A program made the position numbers and the translations under genes. Of a stretch of 64,000 bases of DNA, positions 27,601-33,600 are shown one piece after another (the stretch's first letter is position 1; each line of letters begins with the position of its first letter). Source of the stretch: Bugula neritina (lineage: Eukaryota; Animalia; Bryozoa); assembly GCA_964035545.1 (NCBI GenBank), contig OZ037770.1, positions 11,614,463-11,678,462 of the forward strand, in the 5' to 3' direction. Below the pieces are notes generated by a model that saw only the letters and a program-made list of their open reading frames with translations, was not told the DNA's origin and searched no databases.

Positions 27601-30600
27601 ACTCTTTTCACCGTGAGTTACTTTTTCACTTACTTTAGATGTCCTGGTTTTAGTATCGGTAATGCAATATTAAGAAGACATACTTCAACTCTGATGTTAT
27701 TGAAGAATGATTCTATATATAGCTTTCTGCTCGACTTTTTTGAATACTTATCTTTTATTTTCTTGTTCATTGTCAATTTTAATTTTAATCAAATTCTAAT
27801 TCTAAGCAAATGAAGACTAAACCTAATGCTACAGACAGTGTGTTCATATTATCATCATCATAGCAGTCTGTTGTTAGAAAATGTTTTGCTTTTAGTTTGA
27901 TCACACATCTCCAACTGTTTTTATATTCAGCCTTCTTTTGCCAGTTATCTCTGTCGATATTTCGATTCACAGTGTGCACTTTATATTATAGTATTGACTG
28001 CATAGTGCCTAAACTTTAAATATTAATAAAGTGACAGCTCAAGTTTAGCACCTGATTCATTGTTTTTCAGCAATCATTCTACCTCAGAGACATGCTAGAT
28101 GTGATGGGAACGAGAAAGATTAGAGAAACTACCGACTTTGACTGGAGAAGAAATCCTAGGCTCTACTACCAGGAGGTTGAAGGTCAGCCATGTTGCTTTG
28201 TCATAATGTTTATGTATCGCCATGGTAACCATATAGACACTCTTTGCTTTTCTGTGCTGTTAATCATTTTTAATAACTTGAGGTGGTCTATAATTGTAGT
28301 ATGTCTTTCAAATGATGCCTTTTATCAGGTTTTATCTATTATATATTCAGCTGGTAACCGATGTTTATTTATCGTCATGGTAACCTCTATTGACTGAAAA
28401 CCAACCAATCTACTGTTATCTTGTAGATGAGAAGATGGCACCAGTTATTTACATTCTGGAGAACAAGTTTAGTTACGGCTGTGAGTTCTACGGCAACCAA
28501 GTTGGCATTGCAATGACCTCTATCACCGAGAGATGTTTCTTAACCATGTCTCAGGTAACTTTACTCTGTAGAGATCAATTTTTTCTGCAGGACTTCTGAA
28601 ACAGTAGGGTTGCTAATATATATCCTAACTCATAACTATTTAGAAATTTGATTTGATAGCAAAGTGAAGGTTTCAAGCCTTATATATTTGTTCCTTTATT
28701 CACGTTTCTAAAATCAATTAAGATAAAAATAATAAAGCCTAATGTTGTTGTAGTTGAATATTTTATTATATAATGAATTTACCAGTATGATATAATTTAA
28801 ATATATATCTCCTTTGTATTTAATTTGCTGGTTTTACTGAACGCAATGTTTAACTGTAATAAAGGTTAATGCTGTTATACTTCATTATATAACTCATTTA
28901 CTAGTTTTCTATATTTTGAATTATATGTCCTTTGTATTTTACTTCCTCTAAGGCTTTGTCCAGCTCCCACGGTGTCATACTGCAAGGTCCACAGGCTGTT
29001 GGGAAAACCGAAACAGTCAAAGGCTTTGGAGTTTTGTTCTCAAACTTCATTAGCATGCTGCACTGTGACATGAACATGTCTCCCCATTCTCTAGGTAAAT
29101 AGGAGCCTAGCCTATGAAGTGTTGATTGCATATGCATAGAATATACACTAGTATCCTACTAATATTTTCAGTATCTTTCTTTTTTATTTTATTATCTGTT
29201 CAGATTTTAATTGTCTTTTCTATTATTTTTTTTATCTATCCATATTTTAATTAATCAAATTTTCTATTTATGTTATTATCTATTTAGTATTTTTATTGAT
29301 TATTATTTTAATTGTATTTTCTAATTATTTTATTATGTTGTTATTGGTCTAAATTTGAGTTGATTTCGACAACCTAAGTTAATAAGATATTTTAATGTTA
29401 GTATCTGTCTTTTCTATTTATTTTATTATATTATTATTATTGCTCTATAAAATGTTAGTATATTAGTTCTGGTGTTACTTCATGGTTTATCTATTTACAG
29501 GCAAGCTAATGCAAGGAGTGCCACTAGATGGATACTGGGTTTGCTTTGATGAGGTGCATCTGATGAGGAGAGAGGCAATGGCCGTCCTGCTGCAGTGTGC
29601 TAGTACCTTGTTTAATGCTCTCAAGATATCTCGGGAGACTGTAGAGATCAATGGAGACGAGGTTAGCTTTATATTAAGTAGTAAATGCATATTTGGTTTA
29701 TACACTGAATATGAAGTACGTGCTCCTTCTATATCTCATGAACTTCCATAGGTCACGAGACGGGCTTAAACCTCGTTTTTTGGCTTATGTATGTGTATAG
29801 GGGCAAAATGGCTGAATTTAATGGATCTATGTATTAAATTTGGTATCCTACAATGTCTTGAATTGAGATTTTGGGACCCGCAGCTAAGTGATATACGGAA
29901 GGGGCACTGTAATTACTTTTATGGCATTTAAATCTCATTCTGTGAGAGCAGATACAATGTTGTTTACTAAAAGAGTGTTGAGGACACAACCAACAGAATA
30001 ACATGGTGTTGCATTACTTTGCATGTTAATGTGATAATTTCTGTAAGCTGTGCCAATCTTAATCTTTGAAAAGAATCTCTAGATACAAACTATTTTTCAT
30101 AGTTTGCTCTTCAGACATCAAAACCCATCTTAAGTTTATTACATGTCTTGAAAAGTTTTTCATTTCAACCAAAATTTAGATTCACATTTTATACTCGAAT
30201 TATAAACTCTAGTAACTGTTTGCTTTGGTTAGCTTTTGATGAAGAAGACCTCTCTAGCCATGTTCATGACCTTGAACCCTGCGGCTATGACCAGACTCGA
30301 ACTACCAAATGACACTAGAGCTCTGTTTCGGGTGGTCACTCTGGCCACCCCCGACTTCTCAATGCTACTCAGGGCTAAGTGCGCTGCCCTCGGGCTAAAG
30401 TCTCCGGCAATACTCGGAACTCGTCTCAAGATAGTCAGAGACTTGGCAGCGGATCTCTTGTGAGTTTGTGCTGTCAGCGGAATTTAGTTGGTGGCAGCTT
30501 TATCTCTCACGTTTGTAGCAGCTTTGGAGTTTTTCTAAAAGTCAGATTTCTGTAACCAAATAGGTAACAATAGGTAACCAGAAATTTTACCTATTGTCTC

Positions 30601-33600
30601 TATTGTCTATTAAAGTACATTGCAATGGAGACGGTTAGTAAATTTAAACAGATGATATAAATTCTCCTAAAACCACTTTCTAGTTATTATTTTTACTTTT
30701 ACTAACTAGAGTAGAAGTATTGATGCCGCAGTAAACTATTTTTTATGACCGTCAGCCTCTGACCCAGAATGCAATGATTGAAATCAAATCAACTGTCAAT
30801 TAAATTTAATTTTTTTATAGGATGAACTGTATAATACTAATAGTAACATATTGACTTTCATATTTGTAAGCGTGTATTGTATGTACGTCTGATATACCTT
30901 TAGGCGTGTTATCTGTACGTCTTTTATACCTGTAGGTCTAAGGACTCCAAAGCTTTCCTCAACCTCAACATACTCACAGCTGTTCTGAAGAGATCAGTGA
31001 TGAAGAGAAAGAACATGAGAGGCGACACGGTGGACAGGCAGTCCACTACTATGGAGAAGAGTCGCGGGGAGACTGTCGACAAGAAGGTCACTCTCGAGGA
31101 GTCAAGGTCAAACAGTCAAGCTAGCGGAGCTCTCAACTCAGCCGGCAGTGTCATCAGTGAGTAACATCTTGTTTCCTGTTTTGGGCGTTTTAGCTTTCTT
31201 TTGAAGGAGTAACATTTGTAAGGCTGTATCTGGTTATATTAAAAGTTATGGTTACGGTCATGTAGTATGGTGTAGATATAATGTTACTGAATCATGTGTT
31301 AGAATTCAGCATTCAATTTAATTTTATAGAAAAAGTGAGACAGATGGTGATTTGCTGATTCCAGCTAATCTTCCATTTGTTTACAATGTATGTTGGTTGA
31401 TTCGCTGGTATTGGTTCTTAGCATCACATAAATAACTGTTTAGAGTGTGTGTTTTCATGTCCATGTCTAAAATTTTTACATGGTGACGTAATGTTTTATT
31501 GGGTTTGTTAACTTGACGACATTTTACACTAAGGACTTGATATGTATAAATTTGTATAGACATATTTAGGGACTTGTGATTTCACCGTCATTTCTGATAA
31601 ACTGATACAACTTTATTTATAGCCACTAAGACTGCAAGTTCAACATTACATAGAGTAATGTTAGATTATTTCGAAGGTAAAATTGCGTTTTCTACCCTTG
31701 TTTCTACTATTTTTAATAAATGATTGCTCATTATGAAAATTCTACTGTGATTCACTTCTCTGAGTCACACAGTTTAGGACTGGCATATACAAGATAATTT
31801 TTTCAAAAAAGAATTGAATAAAGTTCTGGCTCTGATTGGTCGATTCACTTATACTGTTAGACTGAATGTTGATAGTGTGAATGTATGGGACGGAGTGGAG
31901 AGTGATTTTAATTCTACCTCTAACCTTCTACCAACAACAATTATACCTGTCTATTTGCATCTTATAGCAGCTACGTTATACTTCATTGACTGTGTAGCGG
32001 CTAGGTTAATATGCTACCTCTTATTCTATTGGCTGTTTAGTACCTAAGTTGATATGCAACCTTTTATTCTATTGGCTAACATTTAATGAAATCAAATTTT
32101 TTTCTAGCTTAAAATTTTTTCTACTTGTTCCGACAATCTACTCTTGCTTTACCTCTGGGCAAGAAATTCACCAATCACAAAGAATAAAAACTTCACTCTT
32201 GATAATCTGTCTGCCCCTCTTTCTAATTGCTGTCTCTTTGAATCCGGCATCACCTAGTTCAAGATGATGGGCTCTCTGAACCCTCCTACTCCAGCATGAC
32301 CATCGCCCCGGCCATCTACGAGGTCGACGAGGAAGAAGACCAGGAAATCGTCGACATGTTGTTGACCAATGAGCACACTCCTCGAGAGCCGAGGCTTATC
32401 ACCACGCCCCCTCCTAAAGTCACGAGAAAGAAGATGAAATACGTAAATCAGCGTCAACAACGCGACGAGGATGCTCGTAAGACCCCTCACTGGAACCCCG
32501 TTGGTGAGCGGATGTTTCCGGAAACGTCTGCACGCGCTCAGCTCACCTGGATTATTCTTTCAGCTTCACCCCTATTGTTTCCTTGGACGACTCGTGTTAT
32601 ATAATGTTATATAGTGTTATATAATGTTCATTTGTAGCACGGAGTCACTCTTTCTATCCGCTGCACTGTTTGCTAGATCAGCTCTTCTTATAAGTTTTGA
32701 GTGACTCACTCTTCTATACATTTATATCAAAATGATTTTTAGCCGATTTATAACTTATATGAATCTAAGCAGCCATTTTATCTGTATTTTTGGCATCTTT
32801 AATATTATTTATCTGTTACCTTACCTGAACTTCTTTTCACTTCTTTTGTGTTCTTGCAGGTCCTGGCCCAGGGACAAGGCAGGACAGATATGGAGGAAAC
32901 AAGTTCAAAGGTACACCCAATCCTCTCACCTCTTACGCTCGCATTGAGCATGCTCTTGTTGGCCAGTCTCTCTTAGAGATCATTGGGCCAAGACTTCAAG
33001 GAGAAGTGAGTTTCAGTTTATAAGTGATTTGAGTTACAATTTTGAGTTTGACATTTTCTGTATCAGTTGTTTTGAGGCAGGTGATATTGAATTTGATGAT
33101 AATCATGGCTTTAACTCAAGAGTGAGTTTATATGAATTATTCTATCAGAAATCATAGATTTGTTTTTTAATTAATCTTAGATTGAGTTCTAAAGTTCACT
33201 CCGGGCTATGACACTTGTCTTAGCTTGTCGCATCAGGTGAAATCTCACATATCGAAAGAAATGAGTTTGTGTCTGAAAATATCTTGTTTATAACCTTAGG
33301 ACTTGAGTTTGTTCAAGACTATAATCAAGGACGTGTTCTCCTCCCTACCCGTACCCCCTGAGCCTAAGACCGCTAGTGCTCGAGCTAAGAATGTGGATAT
33401 TGAGGCGGCCATAGAGTCTCAGGCCGCCGAGAAAGGTCTGGTTCCTCACAAACCGTGGATGGAGAAATGTCTACAGCTGTATGCTGTATCCACAGTCTGT
33501 CAGGGTGAGTTGTGGTACAGCCTGAGAGAGTTTATGTGTAGAACAATGCAGTATCATCCTTCTGCATTTCGCAATACTAGTTTGAATTGAGAAAAATCAA

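Follow-up and report, generated by a model that had tools for sequence, protein, structure and literature searches.

A probable DNAHX-type dynein heavy chain gene with an eroded AAA1 site in the bryozoan Bugula neritina

The window analysed here (the whole stretch of DNA, 64,000 nucleotides) is occupied from 1 to 64000 on the + strand by the body of a dynein heavy chain gene, which was traced as collinear tblastn pieces with about 54% identity to mollusc and annelid DNAHX. The whole gene, placed at C6:11611650-11686242, covers about 74.6 kb and extends beyond both window ends, with its start 2.8 kb upstream and its end 7.8 kb downstream. The window spans ortholog residues ~336-4754 in 69 detectable exon pieces, the upstream flank carries ortholog residues 1-354 and the downstream flank those from 4755 onwards, and orthologs of 5,241-5,365 aa, in keeping with the unusual, insertion-derived length of >5,000 aa that marks DNAHX, were aligned end to end over C6:11611650-11686242, from the first residue through the last. 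The gene length of about 5,250 codons was estimated from these ortholog alignments, with the exons handled separately and unjoined. The first-pass annotation had given an unbroken frame of 4,483 codons over 80 exons; the open frame stood, and the length did not, as that figure covers the in-window part only.

DNAHX was described by Chai, Suchenski Loustaunau, Zheng, Yang and Zhang (bioRxiv 2025, 10.1101/2025.01.18.633724), with the sea-urchin (Lytechinus variegatus) protein XP_041462850 as the type protein and with a reciprocal best match to it over any other heavy chain as the criterion used (10.1101/2025.01.18.633724). The type protein XP_041462850.1 is 5,272 aa long and carries V2221, S2322, T2324 and K2393, in agreement with the preprint. 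It was aligned to the window in 65 exon-sized pieces (50.1% identity, 4,102 aa aligned) and the DNAHX proteins of Haliotis (mollusc) and Owenia (annelid) in 66-68 collinear tblastn pieces (~54.5% identity, ~4,200 aa), whereas the canonical DNAH5-like chain P0149 gave only 34% identity in 20 pieces. DNAHX outscored the canonical dyneins in 69 of the 69 exon regions, and 29 of these were without any canonical match. The reverse search was done with an Owenia DNAHX segment, not with the sea-urchin protein, against the animal contigs, and the window gene was the sole locus with >50% identity, so that the best match was reciprocal for this query. A DNAH5-like segment used in the same manner found three other loci in the genome with 74-97% identity; canonical DNAH5/8-like loci, whose presence the first-pass annotation had left to be checked, are thus found elsewhere in this genome.

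In the tree, the DNAHX clade (SH-aLRT 100) adjoins the DNAH5-like class, and a branch with a support of 100 keeps the two together on one side; the window gene is linked to this clade by its exon-wise matches rather than by a row of its own, and the earlier description of the gene as a gamma-class (DNAH5/8-type) paralog agrees with this position. DNAHX lies on a long stem outside a DNAH5-like group that includes fungal and protist members, and this position could reflect long-branch placement instead of a DNAHX origin within the animals. The long stem, together with AAA1 motifs that vary among DNAHX members, would be in line with a lineage-specific, fast-evolving DNAH5/8 duplicate that became DNAHX-like by convergence. 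Such a duplicate is already contradicted, however, by 50-55% identity to DNAHX over 65-68 collinear exons against 34% to the DNAH5-like chain, by insertions common with DNAHX at the same positions, and by a DNAHX tree that tracks animal phylogeny, from placozoans to amphibians, and it is given next to no credence. Judged from sequence comparison, the window most probably holds most of a single-copy DNAHX ortholog (probability about 0.88), with DNAHX taken as an ancient animal branch of the outer-arm DNAH5/8 class (gamma in Chlamydomonas) and the protein as a non-motile partner. Assignment to an already characterised subfamily had been named in advance as an outcome that would count against the first-pass annotation, and the gene does fall in DNAHX; the biology stands and the novelty is lost for this reason: a description of the family has been available from January 2025 on, and the finding itself is not new. 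A reading of the raw sequence nevertheless sufficed to pick out a real pseudo-motor dynein.

The splice chain was predicted from sequence, borders, phase and ortholog length. AAA1 exons A (28427-28554), B (28953-29094), C (29501-29661), D (30233-30459) and E (30936-31156), all on the + strand, have AG/GT borders that were checked by eye and are phase-compatible, and exon translation placed all of the AAA1 motifs quoted in the first-pass annotation at their given positions, within exons that are open in frame and bordered by GT-AG. Exon A carries the stretch 5' of the P-loop (Pfam AAA_6 positions 1-27). By translation and alignment, exon B carries Walker A GPQAVGKT (28986-29009), in which Lys and Thr are retained and positions 3-5 are altered; exon C carries Walker B CFDEVHLM (29542-29565), in which Asp-Glu is retained and the following canonical Asn-Arg is gone; and exon D carries the sensor-I loop TLNPAAMTR (30269-30295), in which Asn and Pro are retained and the gate Tyr is gone. 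Exon E, delimited by splice sites and phase, carries the sensor-II helix and then a polar, probably disordered insertion. The sensor-II stretch, L/[19 protein letters not shown], crosses the junction 30459/30936, and the Asn codon at 30967-30969 occupies the canonical sensor-II Arg column when each window exon is aligned as a separate fragment with 24 DNAHX and 9 canonical dyneins; the replacement of this Arg by Asn, read at first from an ungapped alignment, was thereby confirmed. The closest Lys or Arg lies 8-9 residues downstream of this Asn.

An unrecognised exon in 30460-30935 that would supply HYDFGLR was not found by a frame search of that stretch; 30455-30940 and 31150-33310 are free of HYDFGLR-like stretches in all frames, and the pattern D[FWY]G[LMIV][RK] is absent from every + frame of the whole window. 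Exon E ends in phase 1, joins the strong acceptor at 32860 in frame and agrees in length with its Owenia counterpart (90 vs 89 residues); given this in-frame junction of 31156 with 32860 and the agreement in length, an extra exon between E and G was rejected as unnecessary. Exon G (32860-33005, + strand, with an approximate 3' end), placed by alignment and phase, carries a family-specific block around TPNPLT that is absent from canonical dyneins, and the AAA1 small-domain exon H (33303-33506, + strand, with approximate borders) was placed by an alignment piece. A phase-compatible candidate cassette exon was also seen at 32420-32503. The AAA2 arginine finger (codon 34724-34726, + strand), which had been listed as retained, is indeed present, with its motif split by a junction: ASPSTLCRC closes the exon that ends at 34729, and GIVYMD opens the next, which starts at 35740.

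Profile and structure searches gave little with these exons. Pfam AAA_6 matched four of the five AAA1 exons weakly (E 7e-3 to 1e-9), exon E alone had no Pfam or PDB match, and PDB sequence searches with four exons returned weak generic dynein matches or none, with no DNAHX entry. Weak Pfam and PDB matches, which run along the whole gene, are what a decaying pseudogene might also give. Comparison with a sister-species contig (L001, from SRR4020083) points the other way: the exons are 95.2% identical against 84.1% for the introns, and the AAA1 exons differ by 26 synonymous and 3 non-synonymous changes (dN/dS ~0.03), which shows strong purifying selection on them in this lineage. With dN/dS of 0.03-0.05, orthologs that match from residue 1 to the last and no stops inside the exon pieces, decay is very improbable, and the first-pass statement that this is not a decayed pseudogene was upheld.

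The states of AAA1 across the family were counted over 95 DNAHX and 55 canonical sequences, which were separated by the whole-protein score ratio, as the AAA1 score alone mixes the two groups. The 55 canonical sequences were invariant at every AAA1 catalytic site counted. Among the 95 DNAHX, the P-loop Lys and Thr were always kept (Lys in 93 of the 93 having a residue there), the Walker B Glu was retained in 42, the sensor-I Asn in 35 and the sensor-II Arg in 5, and the Walker A Ala and the sensor-I Tyr in none; these last three residues and the Asn after Walker B are nearly always lost, and the fifth Walker A position (Thr) is Val in 57. Erosion of AAA1 is thus a DNAHX family trait. The window gene shows the DNAHX combination of a non-conserved Walker A motif and non-conserved sensors I and II with Walker B present, and not the canonical DNAH5/8 set (GPAGTGKT, CFDEFNR, NPGY, HYDFGLR); its Ala at Walker A position 4 is found in 0 of the 95 relatives. 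Some animals with intact-looking DNAHX orthologs fertilise internally. Such orthologs do not fit the link between DNAHX and external fertilisation that the preprint draws (10.1101/2025.01.18.633724), and their occurrence in internal fertilisers, the per-residue counts over 95 DNAHX and the strong purifying selection on a degraded site are small additions to the published picture.

A degraded AAA1 with disordered insertions is also reported for the orphan dynein DNHD1 (10.1101/2025.01.18.633724), and on this likeness the gene could be taken for DNHD1. The Walker B Asp-Glu kept here is, however, reported as missing from DNHD1 (10.1101/2025.01.18.633724), the best matches are all DNAHX with a reciprocal reverse search, and two other loci with a degraded AAA1 in the genome are better DNHD1 candidates. 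The gene is set apart from DNHD1 by description, that identity is hardly credible, and DNAHX orthology is retained.

The insertions of the family were located by alignment on the + strand. The AAA4 small-domain (AAA4S) exon (46112-46429) carries the DNAHX pre-sensor-II insert at about 46166-46321, in columns that are filled in 11 DNAHX and the window and missing from 7 canonical dyneins. For DNAHX this insert is described as lying between H6 and H7 and as made of a beta-hairpin and then an alpha-helix (10.1101/2025.01.18.633724), and AlphaFold2, run on the exon fragment with 21 orthologs, predicted a helix, strands at 28-37 and 43-52, a helix at 57-69 and a further helix (mean pLDDT 68), so that the hairpin-plus-helix is probably present in the window gene as modelled. 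The preprint also places insertions in stalk CC1/CC2 and in the microtubule-binding domain (MTBD), before H3 and in H5 (10.1101/2025.01.18.633724). An acidic insertion in stalk coiled-coil 1, common to DNAHX, lies at 47569-47814, and the MTBD insertion lies at 50136-51836 (exons 50136-50222 and 51654-51836); the CC1 and H5 inserts are accordingly present in the window, and the pre-H3 and CC2 inserts fall where no exon aligns. No PF12777 stalk signal was obtained from ten stalk exons, including the exon with the CC1 insertion, and no canonical dynein match was obtained throughout 46103-55637; 13 consecutive exon regions lacked one. The region from AAA4 to CC2 measures ~990 aa in DNAHX vs ~750 in canonical chains.

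Cryo-EM of sea-urchin DNAHX is described in the preprint as showing an AAA1 with ATP bound, a lock in the pre-powerstroke state and a second heavy chain as pairing partner (10.1101/2025.01.18.633724). By analogy, the AAA1 pocket of the window gene may still bind ATP, as the gene retains Lys and Thr in the P-loop, Asp-Glu in Walker B, Asn in sensor I and the arginine finger of AAA2, and normal ATP turnover would not be expected of it, given the loss of Arg in sensor II, of the gate Tyr in sensor I and of the canonical neighbours in the P-loop and Walker B. The AAA4S hairpin-helix insert would, on the same analogy, hold the C-terminal cap, and therefore the ring would stay in its pre-powerstroke shape; the stalk and MTBD would be disrupted by their insertions. 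The protein may thus be a non-motile partner paired with another heavy chain, which DNAHX possibly keeps inactive during delivery into growing sperm flagella. At first sight the gene had been proposed to encode an altered motor that may bind ATP and act structurally or as a regulator, and this proposal is supported, in agreement with what is published for DNAHX, of which the gene is an ortholog.

Some hydrolysis is conceivable, because many orthologs have lost more of the catalytic set than the window copy has. The retained Walker A, Walker B, sensor-I and arginine-finger residues, with an AAA1 dN/dS of 0.03 that is tighter than a purely structural relic might need, would suit an ATPase that still works slowly or under regulation, as a weak motor or a timer and not as a locked dead ring. 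The loss of the sensor-II Arg and the gate Tyr, the family insertions in a stalk and MTBD without stalk signal and the AAA4S insert, to which locking of the ring is ascribed, weigh against it, and sea-urchin DNAHX also keeps Walker B yet was seen ATP-bound (10.1101/2025.01.18.633724); a weak motor is considered unlikely. It is tentatively suggested, with considerable doubt, that the degraded AAA1 of DNAHX is a conserved working part and not a dead relic, a permanent ATP clamp or a very slow timer for holding the partner dynein, since in this lineage, where dN/dS is 0.03, only the sensor-II Arg and the gate Tyr are missing from the ATP-contacting residues.

Among the known systems, the gene resembles sea-urchin DNAHX in its ~5,250-aa length class, in the Walker A Thr-to-Val change, in the loss of the sensor-I Tyr and sensor-II Arg with Walker B kept, in the AAA4S hairpin-plus-helix, in the stalk and MTBD insertions and in the position beside the DNAH5/8 class. 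It differs in sensor II, with Asn against Lys in echinoderm DNAHX, and in sensor I, where Pro is kept against Ser in sea-urchin DNAHX. DNAH5/DNAH8 (the outer-arm alpha chain of animals and the gamma chain of Chlamydomonas) is the nearest canonical class by score and tree and has the same domain order; unlike the window gene, its members have a recognisable stalk and MTBD, ~4,600 aa and invariant AAA1 catalytic sites. DNHD1, a heavy chain that likewise combines a degraded AAA1 with disordered insertions, is regarded as non-motile and as required to assemble flagella; the preprint treats it as a lineage of its own that is not closely related to DNAHX in sequence (10.1101/2025.01.18.633724).

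Single window exons were used as search queries, and whole DNAHX proteins (the non-motile dynein heavy chain family) were compared with the window by tblastn. Several exons gave weak and unspecific dynein matches among PDB sequences, so the divergence concerns the whole gene and not AAA1 alone. Against a library of 1.84 billion representative proteins, the AAA1 exon at 30233-30459 mostly matched exon-sized fragments, together with a few long proteins from a caecilian, frogs, bichirs, amphioxus and an annelid. A word search with the caecilian protein yielded a sharply bounded family (at least 497 bits versus at most 343 for canonical dyneins), with chains mostly of about 5,100-5,650 aa from amphibians, non-teleost fishes, amphioxus, echinoderms, hemichordates, molluscs, nemerteans, annelids and cnidarians. 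Tunicates and one placozoan joined the family in a further word search, which also recovered the DNAHX type protein of Lytechinus variegatus (P0207, XP_041462850.1). In both searches, none of the long family members had the stalk model PF12777 among its precomputed Pfam domains, whereas nearly all listed canonical chains did. DNAHX was described from sea-urchin sperm by Chai et al. (bioRxiv 2025, 10.1101/2025.01.18.633724) as a chain of 5,272 aa, annotated as DNAH8-like, which branches off the outer-arm alpha (DNAH5/8) chain and ranges from sponges to frogs; its AAA1 is not conserved, its stalk and MTBD bear insertions, and its AAA4S contains a hairpin-plus-helix insert. Val2221, Ser2322, Thr2324 and Lys2393 of the recovered type protein agree with that report.

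DNAHX proteins aligned with the window in 65-68 collinear pieces, at 50.1% identity over 4,102 aa for the type protein; those of Haliotis, Owenia and Mactra reached about 54.5% over some 4,200 aa, and the best named canonical chain, a DNAH5-like protein of Lineus, gave 20 pieces at 34%. The best matches place the genome among lophotrochozoans. DNAHX outscored canonical chains in all 69 exon-sized regions, and no canonical match was found in 29 of these, including 13 consecutive ones over the stalk and MTBD (46103-55637). The ortholog match runs from residue 1 to the last, the gene starting at C6:11611650 and ending at C6:11686242 on the contig that carries the window. Since both ends lie in the flanks, the window is limited to residues about 336-4754 of a gene near 5,250 codons; the 4,483 codons given by the first-pass annotation were too few. 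The window gene is thus an intact DNAHX ortholog. Its earlier reading as a non-motor, gamma-class paralog is supported, but not as something new, because the gene belongs to an already described family, of which it is a new ortholog. The linker exons (16072-24471) are the best conserved part relative to other DNAHX (60-85% identity), and the P-loop and Walker B exons (28935-29745), at about 37-49%, rank with the least conserved.

Among animal contigs, an Owenia DNAHX segment exceeded 50% identity at the window locus only, so the gene is single-copy. A DNAH5-like segment matched three further loci (C4 near 9.66 Mb, C4 near 5.67 Mb and C3 near 21.81 Mb) with identities of 74-97%, so canonical DNAH5/8 genes coexist with DNAHX in this genome. 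Downstream of the gene end, L004:6286-10000 recurs over at least 3.7 kb as a partial tandem duplicate of the gene's 3' end (G000:C6:11690252-11693925, L006:1790-5463). The two copies, which begin about 5.5 kb from one another, share 89% DNA identity, and each contains the last two DNAHX exons in open form.

Other divergent dynein loci were also observed in the assembly. L008 (G000:C5:16871500-16881499, minus strand) has GSKGTGKT in AAA1 and FDNTD as Walker B, by which the catalytic Glu is lost, and is possibly a DNHD1-type gene. L007 (G000:C1:8452500-8462499, minus strand) shows faint AAA1 similarity, and its P-loop region, read over an apparent exon junction as GPMVG/SGRLET, has Lys and Thr of GKT replaced. 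Intronless canonical AAA1 regions on four small contigs (C193:34366-35934, C125:11237-13177, C41:40988-42628 and C165:19977-21344) contain many in-frame TAA and TAG and zero TGA; this fits a ciliate-type genetic code and a probable origin from a ciliate contaminant or epibiont.

A maximum-likelihood tree was constructed from 1,728 aligned columns of the motor region in 18 DNAHX and 25 canonical chains, the window gene not being among the rows. DNAHX formed a clade (SH-aLRT 100) on a long stem, with an internal branching order that mirrors animal phylogeny. In this unrooted tree, built with no cytoplasmic outgroup, a branch with support of 100 separated DNAHX and the DNAH5-like class from DNAH17-type and inner-arm chains.

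Full-length DNAHX proteins occurred, among the matches listed, in a caecilian, salamanders, Eleutherodactylus, Latimeria, pulmonate and other heterobranch snails, Littorina, Pomacea and Dimorphilus. These animals fertilize internally. The suggestion that DNAHX accompanies external fertilization (Chai et al., bioRxiv 2025) does not fit this occurrence.

The AAA1 region comprises five plus-strand exons within 28427-31156 (28427-28554, 28953-29094, 29501-29661, 30233-30459 and 30936-31156), with AG/GT at every border and compatible phases. Their translations contain the motifs first read there, namely Walker A GPQAVGKT (28986-29009), Walker B CFDEVHLM (29542-29565), the sensor-I loop TLNPAAMTR (30269-30295) and a sensor-II stretch of L and 19 further residues spanning the junction 30459/30936. 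Four of the five exons matched the Pfam dynein AAA1 model PF12774 in order, weakly (E 7e-3 to 1e-9), and the fifth (30936-31156), searched alone, matched neither a Pfam model nor a PDB sequence. A hidden exon supplying the missing sensor-II motif was sought, and no HYDFGLR-like coding piece was found in any frame of 30460-30935 or 31150-33310. The fifth exon ends at 31156 in phase 1, and its in-frame connection to a strong acceptor at 32860 gives a spacer of 90 residues versus 89 in the Owenia ortholog. Between these two exons, an 84-base open stretch (32420-32503) with a pyrimidine-rich acceptor, a GTGAG donor and an in-frame fit is possibly a cassette exon inside the AAA1 insertion, without ortholog match. 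The AAA2 arginine finger TLCRCG was confirmed, split by a junction (ASPSTLCRC, exon end 34729; GIVYMD from 35740).

For comparison across the family, 95 DNAHX and 55 canonical sequences were separated by whole-protein score ratio. The canonical chains were invariant at all sites counted. In DNAHX, the P-loop Lys was kept in 93 of the 93 sequences with a residue there, and 91 sequences had the final Thr; no sequence retained Walker A Ala (position 3), the Asn after Walker B or the sensor-I Tyr. Val replaced Walker A Thr (position 5) in 57. Walker B Glu was kept in 42 (Asp in 46) and sensor-I Asn in 35, and an Arg aligned at sensor II in just 5 sequences (Gln in 32, Ser in 19, Lys in 11). The window copy retains Lys, Thr, Asp-Glu, sensor-I Asn and Pro and the arginine finger, with Asn at sensor II and, at Walker A position 4, an Ala seen in 0 of the 95 relatives.

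Selection was estimated with L001, a 3.6-kb genomic contig of another sample (SRR4020083), which is 85% identical to 27350-30936 overall (exons 95.2% with zero gaps; introns 84.1% with 130 gap columns). By the Nei-Gojobori method, the four AAA1 exons differ by 26 synonymous and 3 non-synonymous changes (dS 0.195, dN 0.006, dN/dS 0.03), two of the three replacements lying in the sensor-I loop; dN/dS was 0.05 with two linker exons included. The degraded site is thus strongly constrained, and the gene, whose exons are more conserved than its introns and whose orthologs match end to end, is not a decayed pseudogene, in agreement with the first-pass annotation.

Window exons occupy the alignment columns common to DNAHX and absent from canonical chains, namely a 49-residue AAA4S insert (exon 46112-46429), a 41-residue acidic insert in coiled-coil 1 (47569-47814) and an MTBD insert (50136-50222 and 51654-51836), all on the plus strand. 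No PF12777 signal was detected in ten stalk and MTBD exons. From its sequence, AAA1 is catalytically incomplete and predicted to be competent in ATP binding; the AAA4S insert is present, and the stalk and MTBD are disrupted. By analogy with the sea-urchin structure, ATP would remain bound in AAA1, the ring would be kept in a pre-powerstroke shape, microtubule binding would be abolished and DNAHX would form a phi-like particle with another heavy chain, a pairing by which inner-arm dyneins are perhaps delivered in an inactive state to sperm flagella as these grow. Many orthologs retain fewer catalytic residues than the window copy, so that slow ATP hydrolysis is an alternative here, though an unlikely one.

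The AAA4S exon alone was modelled by AlphaFold2 with 21 orthologous segments (mean pLDDT 68), and the predicted order was helix, strand 28-37, strand 43-52, helix 57-69 and helix. The predicted fold, a hairpin-plus-helix between two helices, is the one described for DNAHX by Chai et al. At sensor II, the window copy has Asn, whereas Lys is found in starfish and sea cucumber DNAHX, in agreement with the sea-urchin report.
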